Below are positions 2,816 through 64,000 of a DNA stretch of 64,000 bases, in pieces (positions within the stretch are counted from its first letter, which is position 1; each line of letters starts with the position of its first letter). Source of the DNA: Azolla caroliniana. Lineage: Eukaryota; Plantae; Polypodiophyta. The stretch spans positions 25,048,001-25,112,000 of the forward strand of contig JBHGNT010000001.1 of the NCBI GenBank assembly GCA_043228905.1. The letters are read 5' to 3'. A program made the position numbers and the translations under genes. The notes beneath the pieces were generated by a model, which was not told where the DNA came from, ran no database searches, and was given only the letters and a program-made list of their open reading frames with translations.

Positions 2816-5800
2816 GTCCAGCCAAAATAGGAGCCGTTTGGTTGGACAGCCCTAGATCTGTGCAGCCCATTAGTGGTTCCATTCCCTCTAAGCATGTTAG
2901 CAATGTGTTCGTAGCCCAAGTAACAGTTAGTACTAAAAGTACCCCTCTAGTACACGTCTTAGCACTTCTAGACTCCGGAGCTAATTCTTCCTTTATGGAT
3001 AGGAATTTTGCCCAAGCTCATCAAATATCTCTTAGAAAACTTCCGTGTCCAGCCTCTGTAGTCGTCATTGATGGTCGTCCCATTGCTTCCGGAAATATCA
3101 TAGAAGAGTCAGAACCCGTTAATATTGTCCTAGATAACTTAGCATGTGTAGTATCATTTAACATTATTAGTATCCCAGAACATCCCATCGTTTTGGGATT
3201 ACCATGGTTCGAGTTACATAACCCAGACATAGATTGGAGAACAAGAGAAATCCAGTGTCGACAAACCCGAGGATCTACTCAGAAGATTGCCACCATTTCA
3301 CTACATTAGTTGCGGGAAGAAGGACGCAAGGAAGAAATGTTTCTCTTCGCAATATCACTAAAACCCTCCAACACCATTAAAGAGGAGTCCACCGTTCAGC
3401 TTCCAAAGAAGTCTCATCATTATGCCGATGTATTCGATAAAGTACGAGCCAATACACTTCCTCACCATCGACCATATGATTGCCCCATCGATTTACAACC
3501 AGGGAAAGAGCCACCATGGGGACCGATCTACAATTTGTCACCAACCGAGCTAGAAGTCCTTCGAGCCTATATAGAGGAGAACTTGGAGAATGGATTCATT
3601 CGACAATCGAAATCTCTAGCCGGCGCACCCATTTTCTTCGTCAAGAAAAAGGATGGCTCACTTCGTCTGGTGGTAGACTACCGTGGCTTGAATAAAGTTA
3701 CAATCTGCAATAGGTATGCACTTCCCCTTATCTCAAGTCTTTTAGAACGGATCAATGGTGCCGGGTTCTTCACAAAGATCGACTTACGGGGGGCCTATAA
3801 CCTCGTACGGATCCGACCAGGAGATGAATGGAAGACCGCATTCCGCACTAGATATGGGCACTTCGAGTATACGGTCATGCCGTTCGGCCTCACTAATGCA
3901 CCAGCTGTCTTCCAGCACATGGCAAATGATATATTCCAAGATCTCTTGGATGTGTGTTTGATCATCTACTTGGATGATCTACTGGTTTATTCAAAGACCG
4001 AAGAAGAGCATGATTCTCATGTACTGTTAGTACTTACTAAAACGACTTCGAGAACATGGTCTTTACGCAAAGCTAGAAAAATGTAGTTTTGGGTGCAACC
4101 AGGTGGAATTTCTCGGCTACGTCATTTCCTCAGAAGGCATCTCCATGGACCCAGCTAAGGTCAAGACGGTGGTAGAATGGCAGGCTCCGCGCTCGGTGCG
4201 GGATGTGCAATGCTTTTTAGGGTTTGCCAATTTTTACCGGAAGTTTATACAAGATTACTCAAAGCTCGTTCTGCCTCTCACACAGCTTACCAGGAAGGGA
4301 CAATCGTTCGTTTGGTCTGAAGAAGCAGATATGGCTTTCGAGAGTCTTAAAAAGGCATTTACATCGGCTCCAATTCTAGCTCATGTTGATCCGGAACTAC
4401 CATTCATTATCGAAGCTGACGCATCGGATTTCGCATTGGGGAGCATTCTGTCACAACAGGGGAATGATGAGAAGCTACATCCTGTGGCTTTTCACTCACG
4501 CAAGTTTGACGCCGCCGAAATCAATTACGAAATTCATGATAAGGATCTATTGGCAATAGTGGACTCGTTTATGCAATGGAGGCATTTTTTAGAGGGGTCC
4601 TCTCATCAAGTCACCGTATTCAGTGATCATAAAAACCTTGCCTACTTTCAGGATGCTCGAGTGTTAAATCGACGTCAAGCTCGGTGGGCCCACTTCCTCA
4701 CGCGTTTCGACTTCAAAATTACATATCGTCCGGGGAAGCACCAAGGGAAGGCAGATGCATTATCACGGCATTCGTATCTTACACCGCGTCCCGGCGAGCC
4801 GGCTTTTGATAACCAAAAGCAAGTAATCTTGGGACCGGCACGACTGCAAGCAACACAGGTTTTTGGCATGCCCATGGATTCCCACGTTATCAATATCATA
4901 CGTGCGGACCTGAAGACAGATGCTTTCGCCCAAGCTATACTAGCACAGATTGATCCCTCTCGAGCGTCGTGTTCACAGTCACAACCACCAGGTACGGACT
5001 ATCGGCAATTCAAATACCATGATGGATTACTCTTCTTGAAAGAACTTTTGTATGTTCCTAATGGTTCTTGCCGCCTTCGAGTAGTACAAAACTGTCATGA
5101 CACATATACAGCTGGGCATTTTGGTAGTACTAAAACATTAGATTTAGTACAACGATCATTCTGGTGGCCCCATATGCGACAATTTGTCGAAGATTTTGTT
5201 CGGACTTGTGATGCATGCTGCAGAGCGAAAATGCCGAGGCATCATCCCTATGGTTTATTAGAACCATTACCAATTCCAAGCAAGCCATGGCAATCCATTG
5301 CTCTCGACTTCATCACAGATCTTCCAGTCTCTAAGGGGTTGAATGCGATTCTAACAGTGGTAGATCGATATACGAAGATGGCTCATTTCTTGCCATGTAC
5401 TAAGGAAATCTCAAGTGAAGACACCGCCGAAATTGTCATGCGTGAAGTATGTCGACATCATGGACTCCCCGATAGTATCGTCAACGATCGTGGACCCCAG
5501 TTCGTGTCAAAATTCTGGAAGCACCTTTTTAAAATGCTCAAGGTCACTTGTAACCTCTCCTCCGGCTACCACCCACAAACCGACGGCCAAGCTGAACAAA
5601 CAAATCAAACGCTGGAGCAGTATTTGCGGTGCTTTCTCAGCTATCATCAGGATAACTGGGTAGATATTCTCCACTTTGCCGAATTTGCCTATAATAACTC
5701 TATCCACGCATCGACTAAAGTTTCGCCATTTTATGCTTATACAGGATGTCACCCTCGGTGGAGTGTACTTGAAACCCCAGAGGTGTCCATAAATCCTTGC

Positions 5801-44957: not shown

Positions 44958-46211
44958 GGGAAACGCAAAGAGAGAGAGTTTTTAAGGAAAAGGCCATACA
45001 TAAGTCTCTCCGATCGATCGATGATTCTCTGTACTGTTAGACAGAAGAGACAGAGAAGAGAAGTCCGGCGGAATCAAAGGTGAGTTTGAACTTGTTGGGG
45101 GGGGTGGGGGGGGGGGGGGTTAATTATATTTCTCTGTGTTTTCTGCCCACCTCCTTCTCCTCTCCACATACATACATACATACTGGTATATGTATATGTA
45201 CATATGTGGGTACTCTGTTTCGCTTCCAAAGAAACAGAGAGTAAAGTAAAAGTGGGTACTCTGTTTCGCTTCCAAAGAAACAGAGAGTAAAGTGAAAGAA
45301 GGAGAGAGAGAGAGTTGGAGGGCATTTAGTGAATTAGGAAATATGTGGAGTGGCATGTAGTGTGCATGCGGGATATTAGGTTTCGAACCCACTCCATAGT
45401 GCTAGAATGCTAGTAGTTTAATGATAACATACCAATAGGGTAAGCTAATTACACTAATTAAGTAATAAAGCGTCAAAAGTGGAAGGAATTGAGATGATTT
45501 TAATTGACATTCACAAACTCTCCATTCACATGTAATCGTGCTCACATCACTCTTGCTAATGCCACTCTAATTCCTCCCAATGCCATTTACATATTTTTAA
45601 TGCGCATTCGCTCGAGGGAACATATGAACAATGCCTTTCTTGCTTAGGCTCGTCGTGCTCCTGTCTAGCCTAGTTTGAATACAAGCGAGTAGACGCAAGA
45701 ATGTGATGATGCCTAGTTGTTGTATGATGTGTATTTGGATGTAGTCGTCAACAAGGATGACGTCGTTTAAAATTTAGAAACAATCTACACGAAGGCCACC
45801 ACTAAGACGTCGCATGCGCGATACTTTTCATTTGGTTAGAGTAGAATGTGCGTATTCGAGATTCAACGATGCAAATTTACGTACGAGTGGAAGAATCTAG
45901 CGGCTGGTATCATGAGACGAGAACGGTATCTACACATCGGAGATTGACAGTTTGAGACGAAAACTCTTCTCGAAGGTCATTTGTATGGTCATGAATGCTT
46001 TTCTATGGATTACATATGTCACACCGCATACCTTTATCCGATAAACCCATTTAAGCTCATCTCCATAATGTGGCGAGTAATAGAATGGTAAGGTAAGTGA
46101 CAAGAGATCCTATGAAAAATACGATGATCAAGAAATATGATGAGAAATAAGAGATCCTATCCGTTCACATGTGAGATCTTCATTCCTTTCACTTTTCGAT
46201 GAAAGGTCGAA

Positions 46212-46284
46212 GATCCTATGCCCTAATGGATAAGGTGTTGGTCTTCGAAACCAAAGATTCTAGGTTCGACCACTAGTAGGATCG
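46212..46284 (+). tRNA. tRNA-Arg(TCG)-like, ACG-type body, mutated
   Basis: GATCCTA/TAGGATC acceptor stem; TTGGT-CTTCGAA-ACCAA anticodon arm; GGTTCGA B box. Confidence 0.75.
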
Positions 46285-46522
46285 GTTTAGAATCGTGTAG
46301 AATCGTGACCCGAAGTCATAATGCGCATTCGTCTCAACCGTCTAGAAAATGCGCGGATCTTGTATCCACTGTTTTGGCTTAATGGATGCATTCATTTACG
46401 AGGATGATGAGGGTTAATAGGTAAAAGAAATGGAATGGTTTATCTGGCACAAATTCCTCATCAAAAGTGTATCACATGTCAATCACGATCCTCAATAGAA
46501 GTACAACCAATGGAAAACCGAA

Positions 46523-46602
46523 GATCTTATGGCCCAATGGATAAGGCACTGGTCTACAAAACTAGAGATTCTAGGTTCGATACCTGGTACCTGGTAGGAT
46601 CG
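46523..46602 (+). pseudogene. tRNA-Arg(ACG) pseudogene (anticodon decayed to ACA, 7-bp duplication in 3' half)
   Basis: Aligns to the other ACG copies. Confidence 0.8.
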
Positions 46603-46892
46603 ATTAGGATTAGGTTACGCTTCTCGAGAATCGGAATACAATGATGACAACGAGACTGCTCAGTAATGTTGCGCAATCAATATATGTGTGGATTCCTTGG
46701 GGTAGGGATAACATCACGTATTTGAACGTAATCATCGATCACGACGATGTCGTTTACATATTTTTAATGCGCATTTGCTCGAGGGAACATATGAAGAATG
46801 CCTTTCTTGCTTACGCTCGTCGTGCTCCTGTCTGGCCTAGTTTGAATACAAGCGAGTAGATGCAAGAATGTGATGACGCCTAGTTGTTGTAT

Positions 46893-49800
46893 TGTGGCGG
46901 TCACATCGACTGCACCCAAATTAGGCCCCTACCAAGCCCCCATAATTAGAAGAGCTAATTGGAGCGGGAGAACACCCTCCACGCTAAGAGTAGTCTATAA
47001 AATGTAATTTGGAACGTAATGGAAAGGGAGGCTATTCTTGAGAGCATTTCACATGTTGGTGGAGATGACGGGCCAAGCAACCCCAACTCACGACCCCAAC
47101 AACACACGCCACGATGTAACACGACAACAACGGCGACAACGCAAACTCAATGAATCCGGAATTCCTACAACAACAAATTCAAGAACATCAACCCACATCG
47201 CCAATCAACCAATTGGTTCAAGCCCTGTCCAACATTATTTTACAAGTTAACCATACTAACCAAGCCATGTTGTCATTTCTTTCAGCATGATCCGAACCAC
47301 AACAGAATCTCCCAGACCCTCAAGTTCGCCCAAAACCATTCTCTGGCCTACCATAGGAAGATGTCCTCTCTTGGCTGGATCATTTCGAAATGGTGGCCAG
47401 TTACCACCAGTGGTCACACCCCCGGAAGGCAATGGAAATGAAGACACTCCTCGAGAATATCGCAGCAACATGGATCGTCCAACAACCCGAAGAGACATGC
47501 AATGTCTGGGATCTGTTACAGGCAGCCATGTTTCGGAATTTTGCTCATCAAGACTCCCGACAGACAACCCTACAACAACTAGAGTCAATTGCCCAACAGC
47601 CACGCGAACTCATCACCCAATTCGTGGTTCGGTTTGTGCAGATCCTACGTTGGGCTGATGCCAACATGTCGGAAGACATGAAGTTGTTTTTTTCTGGCCG
47701 CATATCCGACATGACCTCCGCCACCGTGTACGCGATCAAGGCCCGACCACACTACACGAAGCCATCCTCACCGCCCAACGCATTGAAGCTGTAGACGCGC
47801 GTGACATGCACACACCAGGTAATCTCAGTCACGATCATACAAACACTATGCCAGCAGCCACTCCCATGGACATCGATGTCTAGAACGCGCAATTACGCGC
47901 CAAAGCGTGCATTGCCCGAACGAGACAGCCAGGGACACCCCAAATGTTTCTACTGCAACAACTATGGCCACATTCAGCGTCACTGTCGAAAGTGGCAAAA
48001 TCACCAACAGAAGTAGAACGTCCAATTAGCCGACGTTGCCTCCCTCTCTGAGCTCTCGGAAAACTAATGTGCGGGGTGCCACAAGGAGAGCCACCCCCGC
48101 ACGTCCATGCCTCCACGTCATCAACTTCTCCCGTTTCTCCCACGATCGAGCCGCCCCCGCACGTCCACGCCTCCACGTCATCAACTTCTACCATTTATAC
48201 CACGATCGAGCCGACCCCGCATGTCCACACCTCCACGTCATCAACTTCGCCCGTTTGTACCACAATCGCCCGCCTCCAGCACACGACCCAAGAAGTTCTC
48301 CTCGACTCCAGTAGCAGCATCTCTTCATCATCGTAGATTTAGTCACCCAATTACAACTTCCCACGAGCCATGCACTGCCCATTAAAATCCTCTTCGGCGA
48401 CCAACAACGGTTGTACCACTCACATACGCAAGTCATGTGCATGCTCACCATCAGTTCCGCCCAAATCCAACATCGTTTCTACGTCCTCCCGCGCCAATTG
48501 TTCCCAATCACCCTAGGTTGTGATTGGTTCCTCCATAGTCGAGCCTGTCTCGATTTCTCCTCACAACAACTCATCCTCCCCAATCACCTTCCGATCGCGC
48601 TCTTCACTACTCCGCAAGATACCACCCACATCAGCAACACACAGTACTTGGTATCACCGCCAAAGCGCATCCACGACATCCGACGGCTCCTAGCCACCTT
48701 TCCCTCGTTGTCTACACCACCTTCAAAACCTCCCTCAGTCCGTTTTCCGATCCACCACACGATTCCTACAAGCAACGGCCGCCCCATCAGCGCACCTCCC
48801 CAACGTCGCTCGCCTCTTGACCACGAGCGCATCGACAATGCCGTCAAAACTATGCTACAATAGGGGCTTATCACACCTTCCAAGAGCGAGTGGATCTCTT
48901 AGCCACACATGGTAAAGAAAGGGGATGGCTCTTACCGTTTTTGTGTCGACTTCCGACAACTAAAAAATGTCACCACCCACCTCGTATCGACGACCTCCTC
49001 GACCAGCTCGGCAAATCAAAGTACTTCACCTCCCTCAATCTAGCATCGGGATATTGGCAGATCCCTATGAATCCTAAAGATGCCCACAAAACTGCATTCC
49101 GCACTAGGAAAGGCATTTTTCAGTTCACACGGATGCCCTTCGGCCTATCCGATGCTAGGAGCACATTCCAGCGAATGGCTAACGCCATCTTCGATGATCT
49201 CATCACCCGCCGCGCCGTCATCTTCTATCGAGACGATATTCTGATACACACAAGCACTTGGGAGGAACACCTTCAAGACCTTCGGGAGGTCCTAACTTGT
49301 GTTCAATGCTATTGATTGCAGCTGCAATGGAAGAAGTGTCGATGGGGTAGTACGTGCTTCCACTTCCTCGGGTACGCCATCTCCTCCGACGAAGTACAAG
49401 TGGACCCAGAGAAGACGGAAGCAGTCCAAAAATTCCCACGCCCCACCACAGTCAAGCACCTTCAACACTTCCTCGGCCTCCTCATGTTCTCTTTTCGTTT
49501 CATCCCACGACTAGCCGACCTGTCAACCCCACTATGCGCGCTCTTGCAAAAAGACGCACCTTTCCTATGGACTGAAGCCTGCAAATCCTGCTTCCTACAG
49601 CTCAAGCGAACACTCCAAGCCTCTGACCTCCTGGCCCACCCTGATTTCACGAAGCCTTTCCATTTGCAGATGATGCCTCCAATGTCGGCCTTGGTGCGGT
49701 CCTGCTCCAATTCGACGACAACGACCACCTCCGCCCAATTGCCTACATATGTCGGTCACTTACCAAAGCCGAACAAAACTACTCGACAACTGAAAAAGAG

Positions 49801-51585
49801 TTGCTTGCCATCGTCTGGGCATTCCATCGTTTCCACCCATACCTAAATGGATCAAATACATCTGTTGAAACTGACCATCAGCCATTGCTCTCCCTCATAA
49901 AGAAGGCTCATCCACCCGGTCACTTACTCCGTTGGGCTTTGGTGCTACAGGATTACACATTCACTCCACGTTATCGCCGTGGTCCCCAGAACATCGTCGC
50001 CGATGGATTGTCCTGCATATCCTTTCAGGTGAACCAGATCGCCTCTAACACAATCGATTTCCCCATATCCTCGTCCCAAATGGCCAACATGCAACAACAC
50101 GACAAAAAAATCCAAGACATCTGCCACCGCCTACGAGCCGAGCCCACATCATCCCTCACCAAGCAATTCATGATCCAGGATAATGTCCTGCTTTTTTGCC
50201 AAGTAGGCAAGGAACCCCGGGTCTACGTGCCTGAGCAACTGCGCCTGTCTTACCTTCGTTTCTTCCACGATCACCCATTGTCTGGCCACTTGGGTTTTCA
50301 TAAGGTGTTAGACAAAATCCGTTGCAAATTCTATTGGCCGGGCCTACGCCACGAGGTCACCTCCTACATCAAAGCATGCAACTTATGTCAGGCCATCAAA
50401 TCACCTCAAGTGGCTCAAGGCCTCTTACGTCCGATACAAGTTCAAGCTCCATTTGAAATTGTCGGATGGGACATTATGGGCCTCTTTCCCGAATCACAAG
50501 AAGGGAAAAAATTCATCCTCGTCATAACCGAGTACTTGACGCGTTGGGCTGAGACGACCGCTATCCCCGATGCGAAGGCTATGACCATCGCCTCCAAACT
50601 ATTGGAGAAAATCATCTTCCCCCACGGTTGCCCACTCCAAATCTTGTCCGATCGAGGACCCCAATTCAACAGCGAGCTCCTACGCCTCGTTTCTACACAA
50701 TTAGGAATCCAACAATTATTCATGTCACCCTACCATCCGCAGACGAATGGATTGACGGAGCGCCTCAATCGAACCTTAAAACAACAAATCTCAGCCTACA
50801 TTGATCCGCTGCACTCGACTTGGGACTAGATCTTGCCCTTCGTTACACATGCCTACAACACAACTGTGCAAGCCTCCACCCGCATTAGCCCATTTCGGGC
50901 CCTTTACGGAAGGGACCCGCGCTTACCCCCAAAAGTGGCAGTCCAGCAACCAATCACACGACTCCACTCTGACGCAGCAGTGTCTTGGTGGTCCCACCTA
51001 CAATAACTCCAATCCCTCCTCCGCAAAGCCATCACGAGCAACCTGCACCAAGCACAGCTACGCCAAAAACGACAACACGATGCAGGCTGTGCCGACCATC
51101 AATACCACGTTGGCGACAAATTCCTCGTCTATTTCCCAATCTCTCATCGCGGCCTTAGCGAATTGCTCATGCACCGATGGATCGGTCCCTTCAAAGTTCA
51201 AAAGCAGATACGCAACACTACATATCTGCTCCGCCGCGCCTCCAACAACGGCTCTACCTTTCAATCTCGTACGAAGCCCTTCCATCAGCTACCATCACCC
51301 CTGCCCACAATCATGCCCGAGCCCCCGCCCACGCCCACACCCGTGTCATCCCCCCGCCTAGAACTGTCGTCCACGCCCCGTCGCGATCTGACCGCACAAT
51401 AACTTTTTTTTTTAAAAGGGGGAACTCTGCGGTCACATGGACCACACCCAAATTAGGCCCCTACCAAGCCCCCATTATTAGAAGAGCTAATTGGAGCGGG
51501 AGAACACCCTCCACGCTAAGAGTAGTCTATAAAATGTAACTTGGAACGTAATGGAAAGGGAGGCTATTCTTAAAAGCATTTCACA
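46893..51585 (+). mobile_element. Compact Gypsy element G (~4.7 kb, ~160-bp LTRs, tRNA-Ala-like PBS), decayed
   Basis: LTRs 46893-47053 and ~51426-51585; PBS TGGTGGAGATG 47057; PPT AAAAGGGGGAA ~51414; zinc knuckle CFYCNNYGHIQRHC; RT YRDD; integrase WDIMG/SDRG/ERLN. TSD not clean. Confidence 0.9.
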
Positions 51586-52392
51586 TCTAAAAATTTATGT
51601 ACGAGTGGTAGGATCGATTAGGATTAGGTTCCCCTTCTCGAGAATCGGAATACAACGATGACAACGAGACTGCTCGGTAATGTTGCGCAATCACTACATG
51701 CGTGGATTCCTTGGGGAAGGGATAACATCACGTATTTGAACATAATCATCGATCACGACGATGTCGTTTACATATTTTTAATGCGTATTCGCTCGAGGGA
51801 ACATATGAAGAATGCCTTTCTTGCTTAGGCTCGTCGTGCTCCTATCTGGCCTAGTTTGAATACAAGTGAGTAGACACAAGAATGTGATGACGCCTAGTTG
51901 TTGTATGATGTGTATTTGGATGTACTCGTCAACAAGGATGGCGTCATTTAAAATTTAGAAACAATCTACATGAAAGCCACCACTAAGACGTCGCATGGGC
52001 GATACTTTTCATTTGGTTAAAGTAGAATGTGCGTATTTGAGATTCAACAATGCAAATTTACGTACGAGTGGAAAAATCTACCGGTTGGTATCATGAAACG
52101 AAAACGGTATCTACACATCGGAGATTGACAGTTTGAGACGAAAACTCTTCTCGAAGGTAATTTGTATAGTCATGAATGCTTTTCTATGGATTATATACGT
52201 CACACCGCATAGCTTTATCCAATAAACCCACTTAAGCTCATCTCGTTAATGTGGCGAGTAATATATTGGTAACGTAAGTTACAAGAGATCCTATGAAAAA
52301 TACGATGATCAAGAAATATGATGGGAAATAAGAGATCTTATCCGATCACGTGTGAGGTCTTCATTCCTCTCACTTTTCGATGAATGGTCGAA

Positions 52393-52465
52393 TATCCTAT
52401 GGCATAAGGGATAAGCCGTTGGTCTTCGAAACCAAATATTCTAGGTTGGAACCCTAGTAGGATCG
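52393..52465 (+). pseudogene. tRNA-Arg(TCG) degenerate copy
   Basis: Anticodon arm intact; A box and B box (GTTGGA) mutated. Confidence 0.75.
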
Positions 52466-52738
52466 GTTTGGAATCGTGACCCTCGTGTACGTCGACATCA
52501 AGAACACGACGACCAAGAATAATTCACGGAGTCATATTGCGCATTCGTCTCAACCGTCTAGAAAATGCGCGGATCTTGTATCCATTGTTTTAGCTTAATG
52601 GATGCATTCATTTATGAGGATGATAATGTTTAATAGGTAAAAGAAATGGAATGGTTTATCTGGAACAAATTCCTCATCAAAAGTGTATCGCATGTCAATC
52701 GTGATCCTCAATGGAAGTACAACCAATGGAAAACCGAA

Positions 52739-52811
52739 GATTCAATGGCCCAATGGATAAGGCGCTGGTCTACGAAACCAAAGATACTAGGTTCGATCCT
52801 TGGTAGGATCG
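52739..52811 (+). tRNA. tRNA-Arg(ACG), acceptor-stem mismatches
   Basis: TGGCCCAATGGATAAGGCGCTGGTCTACGAAACC, matching plant cytosolic tRNA-Arg(ACG). Confidence 0.75.
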
Positions 52812-53543
52812 ATTAGGATTAGGTTCTACTTCTCGATAATCGGAATACAACGATGACAACGATACTGCTCGGTAATGTTACGTAATCAATACATGCGTGG
52901 ATTCCTTGGGGAAGGGATAACATCACGTATTTGAACGTAATCATCGTTCACGACGATGTTGTTTACATATTTGTAATGCGCATTTGCTCGAGGGAACATA
53001 TGAAGAATGGCTTTCTTGCTTAGGCTCGCCGTGCTCTTGTCTGGCCTAGTTTGAATACAAGCCGGTAAACGCAAGAATGTGATGAAGCCTAGTTGTTGTA
53101 TAATGTGTATTTGGATGTAGTCGTGAACAAGGATTACGTCCTTGAAAATTTAGAAACAATCTCCACGAAGGCCACCACTAGGATGTTGCATGCACGATAC
53201 TTTTCATTTGGTTAGAGTAGAATGCGCGTATTCGAGATTCAACAATGGAAACTTACGTACGAGTGGAAGAATCTAGCGGTTGGTATCGTGAGACGAGAAT
53301 GGTATCTACACATAGGAGGTTCACAGTTTGAGACGAAAACTCTTCTCGAAGGTGATTTGTATGGCGATGAATGCTTTTCTATGGATTACATACGTCACAC
53401 CGCATAGCTTTATCCGATAAACCCATTTAAGTTCATCTCAGTAATAAAAAATACGATGATCAAGAAATATGATGAGAAATAAGAGATCCTATCCGATCAC
53501 GTGTGATATCTTCATTCCTTTCACTTTTCGATGAATTGTCGAA

Positions 53544-53591
53544 GATCATATCGCCTAATGGATAAGGCGTTGGTCTTCGAAACCAAATATT
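53544..53591 (+). pseudogene. 3'-truncated tRNA-Arg(TCG)
   Basis: D and anticodon arms present; T arm deleted. Confidence 0.75.
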
Positions 53592-53787
53592 TTGTATCCA
53601 TGGTTTCGGCTTAATGCGCGGATCTTGTATCCATTGTTTTGGCTTAATGGACGCATTCATTTATGAGGATGATGATGTTTAATAGGTAAACGAAATGGAA
53701 TCGTTTATTTGGCACAAATTCCTCATCAAAAGTGTATCGCATGTCAATCGCGATCCTCAATGGAAGTACCACCAATGGAAAACAGAA

Positions 53788-53860
53788 GATCCTATGGCCC
53801 AATGGATAAGGCGCTGGTCTACGAAACCAGAGATTCTAGGTTTGATCTCTGGTAGGATCG
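53788..53860 (+). tRNA. tRNA-Arg(ACG), T-loop variant TTTGA
   Basis: Full 73-nt cloverleaf except T-arm changes. Confidence 0.78.
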
Positions 53861-54636
53861 ATTAGGATTAGGTTCCGCTTCTCGAGAATCGGAATACAAC
53901 GATGACAACGAGACTACTCGGTAATGTTGCGCAATCAATACATGCGTGGATTCCTTGGGGAAGGGATAACATCACGTACTTGAACGTAATCATTGATCAC
54001 GACGATGTTGTTTACATATTTTTAATGCACATTCGCTCGAGGGAATATATGAAGAATGCGTTTCTTGCTTACGCTCGCCGTGCTCCTTTCTCGGCTGGTT
54101 TGAATACAAGTGAGTAGACGCAAGAATATGATGACGCCTAAATGTTGTATGATGTGTATTTGGATGTAGTCGTCAACAAGGATGACGTCGTTTAAAATTT
54201 AGAAACAATCTACACGAAGGCCAACACTAAGACGTCGCATGTGCGATACTTTTTATTTGGTTAGAGTAGAATGCGCATATTCGAGATTCAAACATGCAAA
54301 TTTACGTACGAGTGGAAGAATCTAGCGGTTGGTATCATGACACGACAATGGTATCTACACATCGGAGGTTCACAGTTTGAGACGAAAACTCTTCTTGAAG
54401 GTCATTTGTATAGTCATGAATGCTTTTCTATGGATTACATACATCACACCGCATAGCTTTATCTGATAAACCCATTTAAGCTCATCTCCTTGATGTGGCG
54501 AGTAATATAATGGTAAGGTAAAAGACAAGAGATCCTATGAAAAATACGATGATCAAGAAATATGATGAGAAATAAGACATCCTATCCGATCATGTGTGAG
54601 ATCTTCATTCCTTTCCCTTTCGGATGTAAGGTCGAA

Positions 54637-54709
54637 CTACCTATGGCCTAATGGATAAGACAGTGGTCTTCGAACTCAAAGATTCTAGGTTCGATCGCTA
54701 GTAGGATCG
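54637..54709 (+). pseudogene. tRNA-Arg(TCG) degenerate copy
   Basis: CTTCGAA loop; stems partly broken. Confidence 0.72.
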
Positions 54710-54983
54710 GTTTAGAATCGTGACCCTAGTGTACGTCAACATCAAGAACAGAATGACCAAGAATCAATGACGGAGTCATAATGGGCATTCGTCTCAACCG
54801 TCTAGAAAATGCGCGCATCTTGTATCCATTGTTTTGCTTAATGGATGTGCATTCATTTACGAGGATGATGATGTTTAATAGGTAAAAGAAATGGAATGGT
54901 TGATCTGGCCCAAATTCCTCATTAAAAGTGTATCGCATGTCAATCTCGATCCTCAATGGAAGTACAGGCAATGGAAAACCGAA

Positions 54984-55056
54984 GATCCTATGGCCCAACG
55001 GATAAGGCGCTAGTTTACGAAACCAGAGATTCTAAGTTCGATCCCTAGTAGGATCG
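54984..55056 (+). tRNA. tRNA-Arg(ACG), several substitutions
   Basis: 73 nt, acceptor stem intact. Confidence 0.72.
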
Positions 55057-55777
55057 ATTAGGACTAGGTTCTGCTCCTCGAGAATCAGAATACAACGATG
55101 ACAACGAGACTGCTAGGTAATGTTGCGCAATCAATACATGTGTGGATTCCTTGGGGAAGGGATAACATCACGTATTTGAACGTAATCATCGATCACGACG
55201 ATGCCGTTTACATATTTTTAATGCACATTCGCTCGAGGGAACATATGAAGAATGCCTTTCTTCCTTACGCTTGCCGTGCTCCTATTTGGGCTAGTTTTAA
55301 TACAAGCGAGTAGTCGCAAGAATGTGATGACGCCTAGTTGTTGTATGAGGTGTATTTGGATGTAGTCGTCAACAAGGATGACGTCGTTTAAAATTTAGAA
55401 ACAATCTACACGAAGGCCACCACTAGGACGTCGCATGTGCGATACTTTTTATTTGGTTAGAGTAGAATGCGCATATTCGAGATTCAACAATGCAAATTTA
55501 CGTACGAGTGGAAGAATCTAGCGGTTGGTATCATGAGACAACAACGGTATCTACACATCGGAGGTTCACAGTTTGAGACGAAAACTCTTCTTGAAGGTCA
55601 TTTGTATGGTCATGAATGCTTTTCTATGGATTACATACGTCACACCGCATAGCTCTATCTGAAAAACCCATTTAAGCTCATCTCCTTAACGTGGCGAGTA
55701 ATAGAATGGTAAGGTAAGAGATAAGAGATCTTATGAAAAATACGATGATCAAGAAATATGATGAGAAATAAGACATC

Positions 55778-58700
55778 TGAAAAGAATGGCATGCGGAAGC
55801 AATATAGGAAACCGAACAATCGAAAATGCAGGTTTAATGGAAACCTTAGGATTGGACAGGACGCACGGGAGAGACCGAGAGAGGGTAAATACAAGAACTT
55901 AATTCAAAAATAATACTCGATCTGTACATCGTGTGTGTTCCATGAAAACTTTTATACAAGTCCCTTTTGGACTGACAGAAGTACTGATAGTACTTTAATG
56001 CTCATAAGGAGCCCCTACACTAACTCCCAAATATATTCCTTGCGGAATATCTTTTTGATGGCCTCTCGGTTTCTGCACCGATCCGGCCTTGCTACGGACC
56101 GGTCTGCATACCGGTTTCCAACTGATCCGGCCTAACCGATCGGTCCCAACCGATCCGGTCCTCGGCTTGCTCAGCCGATCCGGCCAATGTTGAGCTTGTC
56201 TCTCAACACTCCCCCTCAAGCTCAACTTGAGGCTCTTCGAGATCTTCCGTATCACCGCTCCGGTTCCTCCTGGCTCCACGCCTCGCTCGCGTTGCTTGGC
56301 CTGTTCGACTCTGCGCGCTTCGACCTTTGTGGTCGGCTTGTCTGCTCCGACAGCTCTTCACGGCTCCCTTGCTGTCGCGGTGTTGGCGCTTCTCCTAGTG
56401 CCTTCTTTTCTGCTTGGCCCTCGGTTGATTCAGTGTATCCGAATCAAACATCCGAACCAACTCGGCTACCTCCGATCGGTTTTCGCTCTCGTCCAAGTTG
56501 GCTGTCTCCAACTCGTCTTCGGTCTTCTTGCCCTTGACGATGTCATCTCCCCCATGCTTAGTTGGCTTCGGCTCTTTCTTTCGGCTGCTCCCCTTATGTC
56601 CGCTTATAGACTCTTCCGCGGATCTGCCCTCGGCTTCTTCAGCCGATTCGAAGTCGAATTCGTCATCCGACCCGGTGTCGTAGTCTACGTCTTCCGGAAC
56701 TTCTCTCCCTCTTCCGTGGTCATTCGGGACGTCTCTCCCCCTCAAGTTTGGCACGTTGAGGTGACGCAACCCAAGCGTACCCGAGAACTGCCGCAACTTG
56801 TCCAGACCAAGAGGCTTGGTGAAGATGGCAGCTGTTTGCCGATCCATTGGAACATACTGAAGTTCGACTTCACTAGAAAGGACACGCTCACGGAAAAAAT
56901 GGTAGTGCACCTCAATGTGCTTCGTTCGTGCGTGGAAAACAGGGTTCTTCGCGAGCTGGATGTTGTTGAGGTTGTCGCAGTAGATCGTCGTCGGATCGGA
57001 CACCTCCTCTTGCAGGTCCTTAAGTAGCCACTTCAGTCATATGGCTTCGGATGTCGCGACAACCGCTCCTCGGTACTCAGCTTCGGTGCTTGACAGTGCA
57101 ACTGTCGGCTGCTTCTTATTGCTCCACGCTATCGCGGTACTCCCAAGTGAGAATGCATATCCGAACGTGTATCGGTGATCGGTGGCATTGCTAGCCCAAT
57201 CATCATCGGTGTAGCCGACCAACTGTGAGGCTGTATCGGTCCGATATAACAGTCCTCGGTCCTTAGTGCCACTTACATACCGCAGTACGCGTTGTGCACA
57301 CTGAAGGTGCTCCTCGGTAGGTCGCGCCATATACTGACTGATCACTCCGACCAGATAACTAAGATCTAGTCGGGTGATTGTCAAGTAGATAAGGCTTCCG
57401 ACAATTTGTCGGAACCTCGTCAGGTCGCATACCTTTCCGGAGTCGGGGCAAAGCTTTATTGTTCTATCCAGAGGAGTTGAGATGGACTTACAGTTTGCCA
57501 TCCTGAATTTTAAGAGCATACTCAGTACGTAATGCCGTTGGCTGATCAATATGGCTTTGGTGGTGCGGATCACTTTGATCCCAAGGAAGTAATGAAGGTT
57601 CCCCAGATCCTTCATGTTGAATGATGCCGCGAGCTGGAGCTTCACGCGGTCAATTTCACCTAGGTCAGCGCCGGTGATGACCAAGTCATCAACATATAGT
57701 AAAATATTGACCGGACCGAGTCGACCTTTCCGGATGAACAGGGAAGGGTCTAATTTTGACGTTGCAAAGCCCATCCGACGCAGTTGCTGCGTGATCTTCG
57801 TGTTCCAGGCACGCGGGGCTTGCGTCAGTCCGTAAAGGGACTTCTTCAATTGGCACACTATTGACGTGTTCGTTCCGGAGTGAAATCCGGGGGGCTATAC
57901 CATGTACACCTATTCCTCAAGCTCACCTTGGAGGAACGCATTCTTTACATCCATCTGATGTAAGTGCCACCCCTTTGCAAAGCCCATCCGACGCAGTTGC
58001 TGCGTGATCTTCGTGTTCTAGGCACACGGGGCTTGCGTCAGTCCGTAAAGGGACTTCTTCAATTGGCACACTACTGATGTGTTCGTTCCGGAGTGAAATC
58101 CGGGGGGCTATACCATGTACACCTGTTCCTCAAGCTCACCTTGGAGGAACGCATTCTCATCCATCTGATGTAAGTGCCACCCCTTTGCCGCGGCTATCGC
58201 AAGCAAAACACGGACGGTCGTCATCTTCGCGACCGGCGCAAACGTCTCATTGTAGTTGATGTCGTGTTTCTGTGCATAGCCTTTTTCCACTAACCGGGCC
58301 TTGTATCAATTGATCGAGCCGTCGGTGTTGTACTTGACCTTGTACACCCACCTACATCCGATCGACTTCACACCCTTCGGTGCGTGAACCAGGTCCCAGG
58401 TCTCGTTTTCCACTAATGCGTGCATCTCTTCCTCCATCGCGGCCGCCAATTCGCGTCCTTAGCCGCTTCTACGTAGCTCTCCGGCTCACGCTGCACGGGT
58501 CATGTACACATAATCATGCGCCATGTACTCGTTGTATCCGAACTGCACAACTGGATTCTTCTGGCGGGTAGATCGGCGTAATCGGTCATTAGCCAATGTT
58601 GAGGTCTTCTCGGTCGACGCGGACTTCGCTCTTGAAGACCCGTCACCACTTCCTTCGGAGTCGGACTCGCGTCGGTCTGACTCATTCCTATCCGTGCTGG

Positions 58701-61697
58701 AATCTAACACCTTCTTCTTCCCTTTCTCTTTGAGTGTAAGCCGTCTCCTTGGCTTCCTACGCGGGAAATGCACAACCAAGTCTCCACTACTCGCCGGCTC
58801 TTCATCGGACTGGTTGAACCGACTCAATCATCCATTCGGTCCGCTTAACCGAAACGAAATCGAACTCTCTTCGTGGGTCCCGATTTCAGGCTCATCCGGA
58901 GGTATCTCGGCCTCGCTGACCTCATCGTCAGAACTCAGATTGGAGGTGAGGTCCGGAGTTGGAGGCAAGTACCAGGATGCAGACTCGTCAAACACAACGT
59001 CGCGGCTCACGCGCGCTTGTTTGGTATGCGGGTTATAACAGTTATAACCCTTCTGCTCGTCCGAGTAGCCTACCAAGATACATTTCTCGGCCTTTGCATC
59101 CAGCTTCCTCCGTTTCTCCTTCGGCACATGCACATACGCAATGCTACCGAAAACTCGTAAGTGTCGCAAGTTCGGCTTCCTTCCGAAATACAGCTCGTGC
59201 GCCGACACTTTGTCTCCGATCTGGTTCTGGATGTATATCGCGGTCCTTACCGCCTTGGCCCAATAGAACTTGGGCAAGCCCTTTTCTTCTAGCATTGCCC
59301 GTGCCGCTTCCACAACCGACCGATTTTTCCTCTCGGCCACGCCGTTTTGCTCTGGCGTGTATCTACAACTTAATTCGCGCCGAATTCCCATCTGTTGTAG
59401 ATAACCGTTGAATTGACCGGAAAAGTATTCTTTTCCGCCATCCGACCGTAGGCACTTGATCTTTCTTCTTGTTTCCGTTTCCACGAACCCTTTGAGGTCC
59501 CGGAAACAGTCGAAGACTTCACTCTTCCTCTCGATGAGGTAGATCCACGTGTGCCGAGTTTAGTCGTCGATGAAGGAGACAAAATATCGGCTCCCGCCAA
59601 GACTAACGTTTTGTGCCGGCCCCCACACATCGGAGTGTATCACGTCAAGTTTGTTCCGGCTCCGGTTACGCTCGTTGGGGAAGGGAAGTCGGTGTTGCTT
59701 CCCAAGCTAGTAGGCTTCACAAATTTGTGCCTTTTGGCCACTAAATTTGGGCAATCCGAACACCAGTTGTTTCGATTGCAGGTCTTGGAGCCGCTGGTAG
59801 TTGACGTGGCCTATCCACTTGTGCCATAAGTCGATGTCTGACGCGAGTTTTTGTCCCTTCGCGAACATTGCAGTGCCACCGTCAGTAGAGTCGAGGATGA
59901 AGCACCTGAGGTGTGTAAACCGAACCTGCATCCCCTGGTCGACGATCTGCCCGACCGACACTAGATTCTTCGTGATTGTCGGGACATGTAACACGTTCAT
60001 AAGTTTCCCTTTCTACCCGACATGGCTCAAGGGAACTTCACCGACATTCGCGATCGGATGTGGAGTGTCGTCTCCGTATGCGACTACTCCTGGTTGTGTT
60101 GGTTCTCAAGGTATGAGAACCACTCCTCGTGGCACGTCATGTGGTTTGATGCACCGGAGTAGACGTACCACACCTCGTTCGACTTCGGGGTGATCTTCTT
60201 CATTGAGTTTGCTTCATGTCTCGTCACGAAGACTGACCCTTTTCCGGCTTCTCCGGATCCTTCGGCGTAGTGCGATCGTTGCCGATTTCCTTTGTTGGTC
60301 TGTCCGGAACCTGTTTTAGACCCGGTTCTCTCCAAATCAGCACGCTTTTTCCAGCACTCGCTCTCCCTATGGCCTTTCTTGCCACAATACCAGCATTCCG
60401 CGGCGGATTTCCCTTGCCGGTTCCCGTCGCCTTGACTCTCCCTGTTTCCGGAGGTTCCGGAATCGTTGTCGGCATCACTTTAGTGCCTTCTTCCTTGATC
60501 CCGTCGGCCGCCTCCATTGGGTACCAACTCGCCTCGTCCACCACGACCACGGGGCCTATCTCCCTCTGTGTACAACATCTTGTTGTCGGCATGCGTGCTT
60601 GTCGACGCACCTGCGTGGTTCTCCTCTATAAGGAGCATCGACTGTAAGTCGAAAAACGACAACGTATTCTCCCATGTACACACAGCAGTTTGGAAAGCTC
60701 CGAACTTTGACGCCAAACCCCCCGAGACAGACCTGGACCATCTCGCTTTCCTCGATGTTCACATCGATGGAAGCTAAGGAGTCGCATATTTCCTTGATCC
60801 TCGAGGTATAGTCAGCCACTAACAACTCACGTTGTCGTAGGTTGCTCAACTCCTGTTGGAGCTGAACCTTCCTGGCTATGGTGCTCGCGGTGAAGATATT
60901 CTTTAGATTTCCCCATGCACCCTTCGGCGTTTTTGCATCCCGAACGTAGCTTGATAGTTGTTCGCCCACACAAGACGCGAAACAGTACAACACTCTGCTC
61001 GCCGATTGTTCCCACGCTGGGAAGTCTTTGTGTGTCGAATTGGGTGTTGTAACATTTGCTCCATCAACATAGCTCTAGTAACCGTGCCGAAGCAGGTACT
61101 GGTGCATCTTGTAGGACCAAGATGCGTAGTTGGTTTTGTCGAGCTTCTCCGTCAGAAGCGAGCTAGCCATTCCTCTGTCAAGCGGTTTTCTTGTTCTTCT
61201 TCGTTGCTTTTTCCTTCACGCAAAGTCCACTGCAGACGTTCTCAACCCTCGCCCTCTAATATCATGAAAAGAATGGTGTGCGGAAGCAATATAGGAAACC
61301 GAACAACAGAAAACGTAGGGTTTAATGGAAAGCTTAGGTTTGCACAGTACACACCGGGAGAGACAGAGAGAGGGTAAACACAACAACTTAATTCAAAAAT
61401 ATTACTCGATCTGTACATCGTGTGTGTTCAATGAACACTTTTATACAAGTCCTTTTTGGACTGACAGAAGTACTGACAGTACTTCAATGCTCATAAGGAG
61501 CCCCTACACTAACTCCCAAATATATTCCTTGATGAATATCTTTCCGATGGACTCCCAGTTTCTGCACCGATCCGATCTTCTTACACACTGGTCTGCATAC
61601 TGTTTTCCAACCGATCCAGCCAAACTGATCGGTTCCAACCGATCTGGTCCTCGTCTTGCTCAGTCGATCCGCCCCATGTTGAGCTTGTCTCTCAACA
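55778..61697 (-). mobile_element. Full-length decayed Ty1/Copia element H inserted in the tRNA array
   Basis: LTRs 55778-56208 and 61265-61697; TSD ACATC 55773-55777 / 61698-61702; degenerate iMet PBS 61254-61264; PPT 56209-56219; integrase (RSDGGKEY, QNGVAERKNR), RT (LYVDD), RH (KHIEVHYHF). Confidence 0.95.
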
Positions 61698-61757
61698 ACA
61701 TCCTATCCGATCATGTGTGAGATCTTCATTCCTTTCACTTTCGGATGAAAGGTCGAA

Positions 61758-61830
61758 GTACCTATGGCCTAATAGATAAGGCGTTGGTCTTCGAACCCAA
61801 AGATTCTAGGTTCGACCGCTAGTAGGATCG
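61758..61830 (+). tRNA. tRNA-Arg(TCG)-like, mutated; followed by TTTT
   Basis: CTTCGAA loop, GGTTCGA B box, T4 at 61832-61835. Confidence 0.7.
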
Positions 61831-62105
61831 GTTTTGAAACATGACCCTAGTGTACGTCGACACCAAGAACACAACGACCAAGAATCAATCACGGAGTCAT
61901 AATAGGCATTCCTCTCAACCGTCTAGAAACTGCGCGGATCTTGTATCCACTGTTTTGGCTTAATGGATGTGCCTTCATTTACGAGGATGATGATGTTTAA
62001 TAGGTAAAAGAAATGGAATGGTTGATCTGGCACAAATTCCTTTTAAAAAGTGTATCGCATGTCAATCGCGATCCTCAATGGAAGTACAACCAATGGAAAA
62101 ACTAA

Positions 62106-62178
62106 GATCCTATGGCACAATGGATAAGGCGTTGGTCTACGAAACCAGAGATTCTAGGTTCGATCCCTGGTAGGATCG
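62106..62178 (+). tRNA. tRNA-Arg(ACG), best-preserved copy
   Basis: GATCCTATGGCACAATGGATAAGGCGTTGGTCTACGAAACCAGAGATTCTAGGTTCGATCCCTGGTAGGATCG folds as a cloverleaf. Confidence 0.82.
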
Positions 62179-62899
62179 ATTAGGATTAGGTTTCGCTCCT
62201 CCAAAATCGGAATACAATGATGACAACGAGACTACTCGGTAATGTTGCGCAATCAATACATGCGTGGATTCCTTGGGGAAGGGATAACATCGTGTATTTG
62301 AACGTAATCATCGATCATGACGATGCCGTTTACATATTTTTAATGCGCATTCGCTTGAGGGAACATATGAAGAATGGCTTTCTTGCTTAGGCTCGTCGTG
62401 CTCCTGTCTGGCCTAGTTCGAATACAAGAGAGTAGACGCAACAATGTGATGACGCCTAGTTGTTGTATGATATGTATTTGGATGTACTCGTCAACAAGGA
62501 TGATGTCGTTTAAAATTTAGAAACAATCTACACGAAGGCCAACACTAAGAATTCACATGCGCGATACTTTTCACTTGGTTAGAGTAGAATGTGCGTATTC
62601 GAGATTCAACAATGCAAATTTACGTACAAGTGGAAAAATCTAGCGGTTGGTATCATGAGACAAAAACACCATCTACACATCGGAGGTTCACAATTTGAGA
62701 CGAAAACTCTTCTCGAAGGTCATTTGTATGGTCATGAATGCTTTTCTATGGAATACATACGTCATACCGCATAGATTTATCCGATAAACCCATTTAAGCT
62801 CATCTCCTTAATGTGGCGAGTAATATAATGGTAAGGTAAGAGACAAGAGATCTTATGAAAAATATGATGATCAAGAAATATGATGAGAAATAAGACATA

Positions 62900-64000
62900 T
62901 GAAAAGAATGGTGTGCAGAAGCAATATAGGAAACTGAACAACAGAAAACGCAGGTTTAATGGAAACATTAGGTTTGTACAGTACGCACGGGAGAGAGAGA
63001 GAGAGAGGGTAAACACAAGAACTTAACTCAAAAATAATACTCGATCTGTACATCGTGTGTGTTCGATGAACACTTTTACACAAGTCCCTTTTGGACTGAT
63101 AGAAGTACTGACAGTACTTCAATGCTCATAAGGAGCCCCTACACTAACTCCCAAATATATTCCTTGCGGAATATCATTCTGATGGCCTCCCGGTTTCTGC
63201 ACCGATCCGGCTTTCCTATGCACCAATCTGCATACCGTTTTCTGCACCGATCCGGCCTAATCGATCGGTTCGAACCGATCTAGTCCTTGGCTTGCTCAGC
63301 CGATCCGGCCCATGTTGAGCTTGTCTCTCAAGACTCCCCCTCAAGCTCAACTTGAGGCTCTTCGGGATCTTCCGGATGACCGCTCCGGTTCCTCCTGGCT
63401 CCACGCCTCGCTCGCGCTCCTTGGCCTGTTTGACTCCACGTGCTTCGACCCTTTCGGTTGGTTTGTCTGCTCCCACGGCCCTTCACAGCTCCCTTAATGT
63501 CGCGGTGTTGGCGCTTCTCTTGCCGCCTTCTTTTCCGCTTGGCCCTCGGTTGATTTAGTGTATCTGAATTAAACATCCGAACCGAATTGGCTACCTCCGA
63601 TCGGTTTTCGCTCTCGTTTGAGTTGGCTATCTCCAACTCGTCTTCAGTCTTCTTGCCCTTGATGGTGTCATCTTCCCCATGCTTGGTTGGCTTCGGCTCT
63701 TTCTTTCGGCTGCTCCCCTTATGTCCGCTTTTGGACTCTTCCGCGGATCCGCCCTTGGCTTCTTCAGCCAATCCGAAGTTGAATTCGTCATCCGACTCGG
63801 TGTCGCGGTCTACGTCTTCCGGAACTTCTCTCCCTCTTCCATGTTTGGCACGTCGAGGTGAAGCAACCTAAGCGTACCCGAGAATTGTCGCAACTTGTCC
63901 AGACCAAGAGGCTTGGTGAAGATGTCGGCCGTTTGCCGATCCGTCGGAACATACTAAAGTTCGACTTCACTAGAAAGAACACGCTCACACACAAAATGGT
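62900..64000 (-). mobile_element. Second Copia (element H family): 3' LTR 62900-63333 plus pol 3' end; continues beyond window
   Basis: LTR and RH/extension homologous to 55778-56900; inserted after ACATA at the same position in the array unit. Confidence 0.92.

Follow-up and report, generated by a model that had tools for sequence, protein, structure and literature searches.

A 64,000-nucleotide (nt) stretch of the genome of the fern Azolla caroliniana (GenBank assembly GCA_043228905.1, contig JBHGNT010000001.1, positions 25,048,001 to 25,112,000 of the forward strand; hereafter, the window) contains, at positions 45586-62898, a head-to-tail array of an approximately 1196-bp unit with two tRNA-Arg genes per unit, as resolved by repeat finding and by blastn with a reference unit. 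The array totals five units plus parts, with all tRNA genes on the plus strand, and holds five copies of a TCG-type gene (T1 to T5), five copies of an ACG-type gene (A1 to A5), and one 3' fragment. The unit period is 1195-1196 bp, with the exception of a single 1049-bp unit that is shortened by a 123-bp deletion, and the TCG-to-ACG distance between gene starts ranges from 311 to 348 bp. ARAGORN calls six tRNA-Arg genes, all in the interval 46.2-62.2 kb; with the Rfam tRNA model, run at a permissive threshold, the count rises to 10, and blastn with the best tRNA copy as the query recovers all 11 pieces. The array extent, copy counts, period, and gene spacing that had originally been predicted from the sequence are all correct. 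A blastn search of the remaining 45 kb of the window found no unit-like or tRNA-Arg-like sequence.

Mapped onto the reference unit (53788-54983, complete at 1196 bp), the array opens with a partial unit at 45586..46522 (unit positions 224-1196), which holds T1, and continues with unit positions 1-363 at 46523..46892, which hold A1. It resumes at 51606..52738 with unit positions 63-1196; the first 11 nt of this segment (51606-51616) are the 3' end of an ACG-type gene, and T2 lies farther along. The unit with the 123-bp deletion (52739..53787) holds A2 and T3, the complete unit (53788..54983) holds A3 and T4, and unit positions 1-794 (54984..55777) hold A4. After a second interruption, unit positions 790-1196 (61698..62105) hold T5 and unit positions 1-793 (62106..62898) hold A5, all of these segments being on the plus strand. 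The array probably continues past the end of the window, because its last unit adjoins a retroelement that runs off at position 64000.

None of the 10 tRNA gene copies in the window is intact. Compared to intact references from a related contig (UCG gene, L001:68-140; ACG gene, L001:570-642), each full-length copy differs at 3 to 10 of its 73 positions, the damage consisting of broken stem pairs or the loss of either the invariant C56 or the B-box G52/G53:C61. In every copy, box A or box B is altered or stems are broken, and none has the features of a working RNA polymerase III (Pol III) gene. Their Rfam tRNA scores span 24-52 bits, as opposed to 69.4 bits for the UCG gene and 62.7 bits for the ACG gene of the relatives. 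Among the TCG-type copies, T1 (46212-46284; 51.2 bits) has three changes, with pairs 10:25 and 53:61 broken; T2 (52393-52465; 38.3 bits) has seven changes and three broken pairs and has lost C56; T3 (53544-53591) is cut off after position 48 and scores 27.6 bits, which is below the gathering score; T4 (54637-54709; 24.1 bits) has 10 changes and seven broken pairs; and T5 (61758-61830; 43.7 bits) has five changes and four broken pairs. Among the ACG-type copies, A1 (46523-46600), a partial Rfam match of 35.6 bits, has a 5-nt duplication in the T arm/acceptor and an anticodon mutated to ACA; A2 (52739-52811; 41 bits) has six changes, with pairs 6:67 and 27:43 broken; A3 (53788-53860; 51.6 bits) has three changes, with the invariant C56 lost and pair 53:61 weakened; A4 (54984-55056; 49.9 bits) has four changes, with pairs 29:41 and 52:62 broken; and A5 (62106-62178; 50.2 bits) has three changes, with pair 12:23 broken. 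Variants specific to the window include T56, T61, and G64 in copy A3 and A12 and T27 in copy A5.

The genes of the window are no better preserved than the sequences that separate them. Divergence from the array consensus amounts to 5.1% for the ACG genes and 10.1% for the UCG genes (8.2% without the truncated copy), compared to 4.6% for the spacers, indicating that the genes evolve without constraint at this locus. There is a bias in the spectrum of these changes: 137 of the 328 departures from the array consensus are C>T or G>A, and the rate of such changes per site-copy is 8.4% at CG sites, 10.1% at CHG sites, and 2.9% at CHH sites, whereas transitions at A/T sites occur at 1.2%. Plants methylate cytosines in two symmetric contexts, CG and CHG, and methylated cytosines are subject to deamination. 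The C>T bias at CG and CHG sites therefore suggests long-standing methylation and silencing of the array. The consensus of the window array differs from the intact genes at only one position each, indicating that the array began from a good cassette.

Intact members of the family occur in public metagenome contigs, which were scanned for the UCG anticodon arm with a pattern that fixed positions 23-47. Six contigs from five metagenome assemblies (L001, L002, L004, L007, L009, and L011) carry the same two-gene cassette with complete genes; all six thus have the intact, high-confidence tRNA genes of a cluster member, which no copy in the window is. The spacers of these relatives are 72-82% like the window unit and 87-92% like each other, whereas their genes hardly vary: across the six contigs, the UCG genes are identical in 7 of 7 cases and the ACG genes in 6 of 7, the seventh (in L004) having a C27T change that yields a G-U wobble. 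At a spacer divergence of about 13%, the chance of encountering zero change in 146 nt is about 1e-9. The UCG gene therefore appears to be kept under selection in the relatives rather than being merely a mutated pseudogene, and we infer that the intact copies function as tRNAs. The original prediction had described the array as amplified and now decaying; decay is indeed the condition of the copies in the window, but it is local, the cassette being intact and conserved in the related contigs.

Public contigs were also aligned to positions 51606-55777 at 80% likeness. The high-depth contigs in sequencing run X1 reach depths of about 3500-5000, as opposed to about 30-50 for contigs that match the window locus almost exactly, depth in these comparisons not being a copy number. 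At damaged sites of the window, the high-depth contigs of X1 read the consensus letters (T>C at 53848 and TA>AT at 54638-54639), and X2 agrees with the consensus letters at all three sites. In X3, which represents a second organism, the consensus appears at high depth only at 53848, the depth at 54638-54639 being about 21. The family looks alive elsewhere, because its genes remain invariant while the spacers diverge and because high-depth contigs carry the consensus letters; as a rough figure, the cassette may be present in about a hundred copies.

The organization of the unit differs somewhat in the relatives. In L001, an internal tandem duplication, whose two copies are 83% alike, makes the spacer between the UCG and ACG genes (250-558) exceed that of the window by about 155 bp, and the units are 928 and 1433 bp in length, compared to 1196 bp in the window. 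The 60 nt situated 5' of the UCG gene (46150-46211, 52331-52392, and 54575-54636 in the window; 8-67 in L001) hold a block that is conserved between the window and the relatives and that contains CACGTG as well as a repeat of the initial 9 nt of the tRNA (GATCCTATC). About 100 nt upstream, these 9-11 nt appear once more, such that the spacer holds small relics of the 5' end of the gene. Just to the left of the array, at 45371-45400, there is a B-box-like motif (GGTTTCGAACCC) around which no tRNA is called and which may be left over from some other tRNA-derived sequence.

The two genes of the cassette are closely related, the intact UCG and ACG genes differing at 5 of 73 positions (68/73 identical). 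Relative to the ACG gene, the UCG gene has C13T, which closes pair 13:22, a C-A mismatch in the ACG gene; C27T together with G43A, which convert a C-G pair into a compensated T-A pair; A34T, which is the anticodon change; and T59C, which lies in the T loop. The genes share their acceptor stem, T stem, about 13 nt of the 5' flank, and about 17 nt of the 3' flank. The swap in the anticodon stem that had been reported for the window copies (CTGGT/ACCAG > TTGGT/ACCAA) is real, and the compensated 27:43 pair is fixed in the intact relatives.

Both genes were compared, with identities counted by hand, to angiosperm tRNA references from the supplement of PMC12652284. The cassette ACG gene is identical to tRNA-Arg(ACG) of Arabidopsis and other angiosperms at positions 8-48 and matches it at 65/73 positions overall, differing only by four compensated pairs (3:70, 4:69, 7:66, and 51:63); the parent of both cassette genes was, to judge from these sequences, already a diverged ACG isodecoder. 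The UCG gene matches the angiosperm ACG gene at 60/73 positions. The usual plant tRNA-Arg(UCG) is 74 nt long and differs in its D, anticodon, and T arms, and the UCG gene matches it at only 47/74 columns (63.5%). This agrees with the original prediction that the TCG gene has the body of plant tRNA-Arg(ACG) and not the usual UCG body, and by identity the TCG gene is unrelated to canonical plant Arg(UCG) genes. The UCG gene is closer to genes for the same amino acid with another anticodon than to genes with its own anticodon. A UCG anticodon on the arm of an ACG body was not found among the first few species of the PMC12652284 supplement, none of which is a fern.

In a tree built on a 73-column alignment, which resolves little, the UCG and ACG genes of the cassette group together, apart from environmental TCG genes with the same anticodon arm (L003 and L010), with support of 87/92. 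With only five differences and with arms and flanks in common, as opposed to about 63% identity to the usual UCG gene, the UCG gene is the sister of its ACG neighbor, and all five of its distinguishing states are derived when the angiosperm ACG gene serves as the outgroup. An isoacceptor anticodon shift is the best reading of this relationship, and we infer its direction to be from ACG to UCG, the polarity coming from the angiosperm outgroup only. That an isoacceptor arose by anticodon shift had been proposed from the outset, and the sister relation to the ACG gene bears this out; that the shift was recent and fern specific is likely but not proven, given the UCG gene of contig L010.

Some environmental contigs in the metagenome scan contain tRNA-Arg(UCG) genes in other settings. 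The gene in L010 (1216-1288; 69.5 bits) resides on a eukaryote-like contig of 48% GC and has C54 in its T loop. Four contigs (L003, L005, L006, and L008) consist of very dense one-strand clusters of 8-19 tRNA genes with repeated Ile-UAU / Leu-UAA / Glu-UUC modules, and these clusters include tRNA-Arg(UCG) with plant ACG-type D and anticodon arms in which C27-G43 is kept. Their host may be a giant virus or a protist.

The prediction made from the sequence had noticed neither that every copy is damaged nor that the two long gaps in the array are long terminal repeat (LTR) retrotransposons. The first, recognized from its Pfam domains, LTR pair, and junctions, is a Ty3/gypsy element on the plus strand at 46893..51590, with RT_RNaseH, Integrase_H2C2, and rve domains in an open reading frame at 49801-50829 and with short LTRs (46897-47054 and 51429-51586) that are 96% alike. 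Most of one unit is lost at the insertion site. At the right end of the element (51591-51616), about 15 nt resembling unit position ~510-525 (…TACGAGTGG) are fused directly to the last 11 nt of the ACG-type gene, suggesting that a deletion with microhomology accompanied the gypsy insertion or came after it.

The second gap is a Ty1/copia element on the minus strand at 55778..61697 (Pfam RVT_2 and SH3_retrovirus), whose LTRs of about 431 bp are 89% alike and which is flanked by a 5-bp target duplication, ACATC (55773-55777 and 61698-61702). Another copy of the same copia lies at 62899..64000, also on the minus strand, where it occupies the identical unit position and runs off the window; it is 87.8% identical to the first and has the same orientation and a junction that is identical to the nucleotide. 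Units and copia repeat with one 7121-7122-bp period, the block 54577-61697 being repeated from 61698, and together they form a higher-order repeat (54577-64000) composed of unit positions 790-1196, unit positions 1-794, and copia. The three copia LTRs are about equally distant from one another (11-12%), and T4 and T5, which are one period apart, share four derived changes and are sisters in the tree (support of 96/93). The identity of the junctions, the changes shared by T4 and T5, and the equidistance of the LTRs all point to one copia insertion followed by an unequal crossing-over that duplicated the unit together with copia. Two independent, Pol III-targeted copia insertions at one nucleotide were considered and rejected, since a single insertion plus a 7.1-kb tandem duplication suffices.

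We consider it highly probable that this locus is a dead, probably methylated, and transposon-invaded side array of a living tRNA-Arg(UCG)/tRNA-Arg(ACG) cassette family. In its intact state, the nuclear cassette of about 1.2 kb comprises a tRNA-Arg(UCG) gene and, after it and on the same strand, a tRNA-Arg(ACG) gene; A and B boxes for Pol III lie inside each of the two. The UCG gene would have originated from a duplicate of the neighboring ACG gene through the change of A34 to T, and it would then have fixed C13T, the replacement of C27-G43 by T27-A43, and T59C. Unequal crossing-over would have amplified the two-gene unit head to tail, with both genes being kept intact elsewhere in the genome and in related plants. 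The array in the window, in contrast, would have stopped being maintained and received the gypsy and copia insertions, and a further unequal crossing-over would have duplicated the 7.1-kb block of unit and copia. All 10 genes would have drifted at the neutral rate, with the bias typical of methylated cytosines, and become pseudogenes.

Several points weigh against this account. Intact copies are attested by related contigs and by a handful of listed variant positions, methylation is suggested by the mutation spectrum, and X6, the sole run guessed to be RNA, gave no contig on 51606-55777. The least damaged copies, A3, A5, and T1, might still yield some transcript. The UCG gene of L010 is identical to the cassette UCG gene at positions 8-48 and has different acceptor and T arms, and on the basis of this match the UCG "core" may be older than the cassette. 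Lastly, no run of four or more T's occurs within 88-165 nt downstream of either gene, and this includes the intact genes of L001, L002, and L004; such a terminator-poor downstream region is unusual for working Pol III genes. Among the window copies, the first TTTT lies 88-166 nt downstream, T5 excepted. The first T run is situated at a roughly conserved distance, about +110-123 after the UCG gene and about +159-166 after the ACG gene, and these distances imply long 3' trailers or an unusual terminator.

The resemblance to L010 bears most directly on how the UCG gene came to be. It could be an old tRNA-Arg(UCG) lineage of its own, in which gene conversion inside the tandem array (concerted evolution) replaced the acceptor stem, T arm, and near flanks with those of the ACG neighbor, but we regard this as unlikely. 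L010 carries T13, T27:A43, and the UCG anticodon on unrelated acceptor and T arms, and the clusters in L003, L005, L006, and L008 bear UCG on an "ACG-like" arm with C27-G43, such that other organisms use this anticodon arm for UCG. Angiosperm Arg-CCG and Arg-TCT genes likewise have T13, and the half-steps at 27:43 found among ACG-type genes (in A5, in A2, and in L004) are what conversion, or recurrent mutation, would give. However, because the search pattern fixed positions 23-47, only T13 in L010 counts as free evidence, and T13 amounts to one transition that restores a pair. Nor need the half-steps derive from conversion, because C27 and G43 both belong to the CHG class, which is the most mutable in this array. 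The UCG and ACG genes of the cassette group against L003 and L010 in the tree (87/92), the angiosperm UCG gene is quite different (63.5%), and the similarity between the two cassette genes extends into both flanks, as duplication of DNA predicts. An anticodon shift in a duplicated ACG gene is thus the origin that we favor.

Two other alternatives concern function. Part of the window array could still be working, with A3, A5, and T1 transcribed and used, perhaps conditionally, a behavior that has been proposed for silent clusters of Arabidopsis. These copies have only three changes each and score 50-52 bits, above the Rfam gathering score, and some clustered tRNA genes of Arabidopsis that are silent in most tissues are reactivated in root tips (PMC12308677). 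Yet A3 is without the invariant C56, pair 12:23 in the A box of A5 is broken, and so are pairs 10:25 and 53:61 of T1; compared to the spacers, the genes show no sign of constraint, the spectrum of mutations is of the kind that methylation leaves, and the array harbors old retroelements (LTRs 89% alike), all of which make residual activity very unlikely. Alternatively, the unit could be a tRNA-derived short interspersed nuclear element (SINE) or a satellite without tRNA function anywhere, its tRNA-like parts being relics of a retroposon head. The degeneracy of every window copy, the failure to find a Pol III terminator nearby, and the high copy number are all compatible with such an element, but the array is strictly head to tail, its period is constant, its copies lack target-site duplications and tails, and none lies dispersed in the remaining 45 kb of the window. 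Moreover, the 73-nt genes of the relatives are complete cloverleaves of 63-69 bits, not heads, and remain invariant amid diverging spacers (the chance of about 1e-9 given above). A tRNA-derived SINE is therefore rejected, leaving this alternative extremely improbable, and the original prediction of a tandem cluster rather than a dispersed SINE stands. The reading that we prefer remains that of a dead side array in a family that is conserved elsewhere.

A more far-reaching version of this reading is doubtful. The cytosolic tRNA-Arg(UCG) of this plant lineage might come wholly or mainly from the anticodon-shifted gene, which would have been co-amplified with its parent to roughly at least 100 copies and have replaced the usual land-plant UCG gene. 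Since a T-run terminator is missing from the first 100 nt or so after both genes, the cassette may be transcribed into RNAs with long trailers or into one precursor that spans the two genes.

Tandem clusters of tRNA genes are well documented in plants and include Ser-Tyr-Tyr and Pro in Arabidopsis, Ile and Ala in maize, Gln in barley, and multi-isotype repeats in the moss Ceratodon (PMC11700998, PMC12652284, PMC13437025). Like these clusters, the array in the window consists of a unit of about 1 kb with tRNA genes, arranged head to tail through local duplication. Unlike them, its isotype is Arg, which is not named as a cluster former in any of the three papers; the two genes of its cassette are mutually sister isoacceptors of one amino acid; and the copy in the window is fully pseudogenized and interrupted by LTR retrotransposons. 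The tRNA clusters of Arabidopsis are methylated and mostly silent (PMC11700998). Published definitions of a cluster call for a minimum of five tDNAs in a 5-kb span (PMC13437025) or at least three per kb (PMC11700998). With six tRNA-like copies in 4.2 kb (51606-55777), the array reaches the former only if pseudogenes count, and its density of two genes per 1.2 kb is below the latter. An Arg-Arg cassette was not found described in the literature searched on plant tRNA clusters, and to this extent the original statement that no Arg-Arg array has been described holds; its novelty is tempered by the bulk report of 220 tandem pairs with the same amino acid and different anticodons (PMC12652284).

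Isoacceptor shifts, as surveyed by Rogers and Griffiths-Jones in 2014, mostly affect the first base of the anticodon; the changes that go with them lie in the middle of the molecule and not at the acceptor end (PMC3923123). The UCG gene of the cassette follows this pattern, with changes at the first anticodon base and at 13, 27:43, and 59 and an unchanged acceptor end. The organisms in that survey were primates, flies, nematodes, yeasts, and enterobacteria, with no plants among them, and synteny supplied the proof, whereas the case for a shift in the cassette is built on the similarity of the sister genes and on an outgroup; the cassette also differs in that the shifted gene and its parent were later amplified together. 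Azolla filiculoides has about 7500 tRNA genes (PlantRNA 2.0, cited in PMC13437025 and PMC13578239), and a high-copy Arg cassette would fit such a very large gene set; these two papers give totals only and describe no Arg-Arg cassette.

Taken alone, the window locus is a pseudogene array, the ordinary half of a contrast. Set beside its relatives, it supplies a dead, methylation-scarred array and a conserved array of one family, a natural contrast for what keeps tRNA arrays alive, with homogenization, selection, or chromatin state as candidate factors. Tandem tRNA clusters and isoacceptor shifts are both already known, and the Arg cassette adds a case to each: it extends the short list of cluster-forming plant tRNA isotypes to arginine, and it provides a clear plant case of an isoacceptor that was probably made from its neighbor by an anticodon change together with a compensated stem pair.

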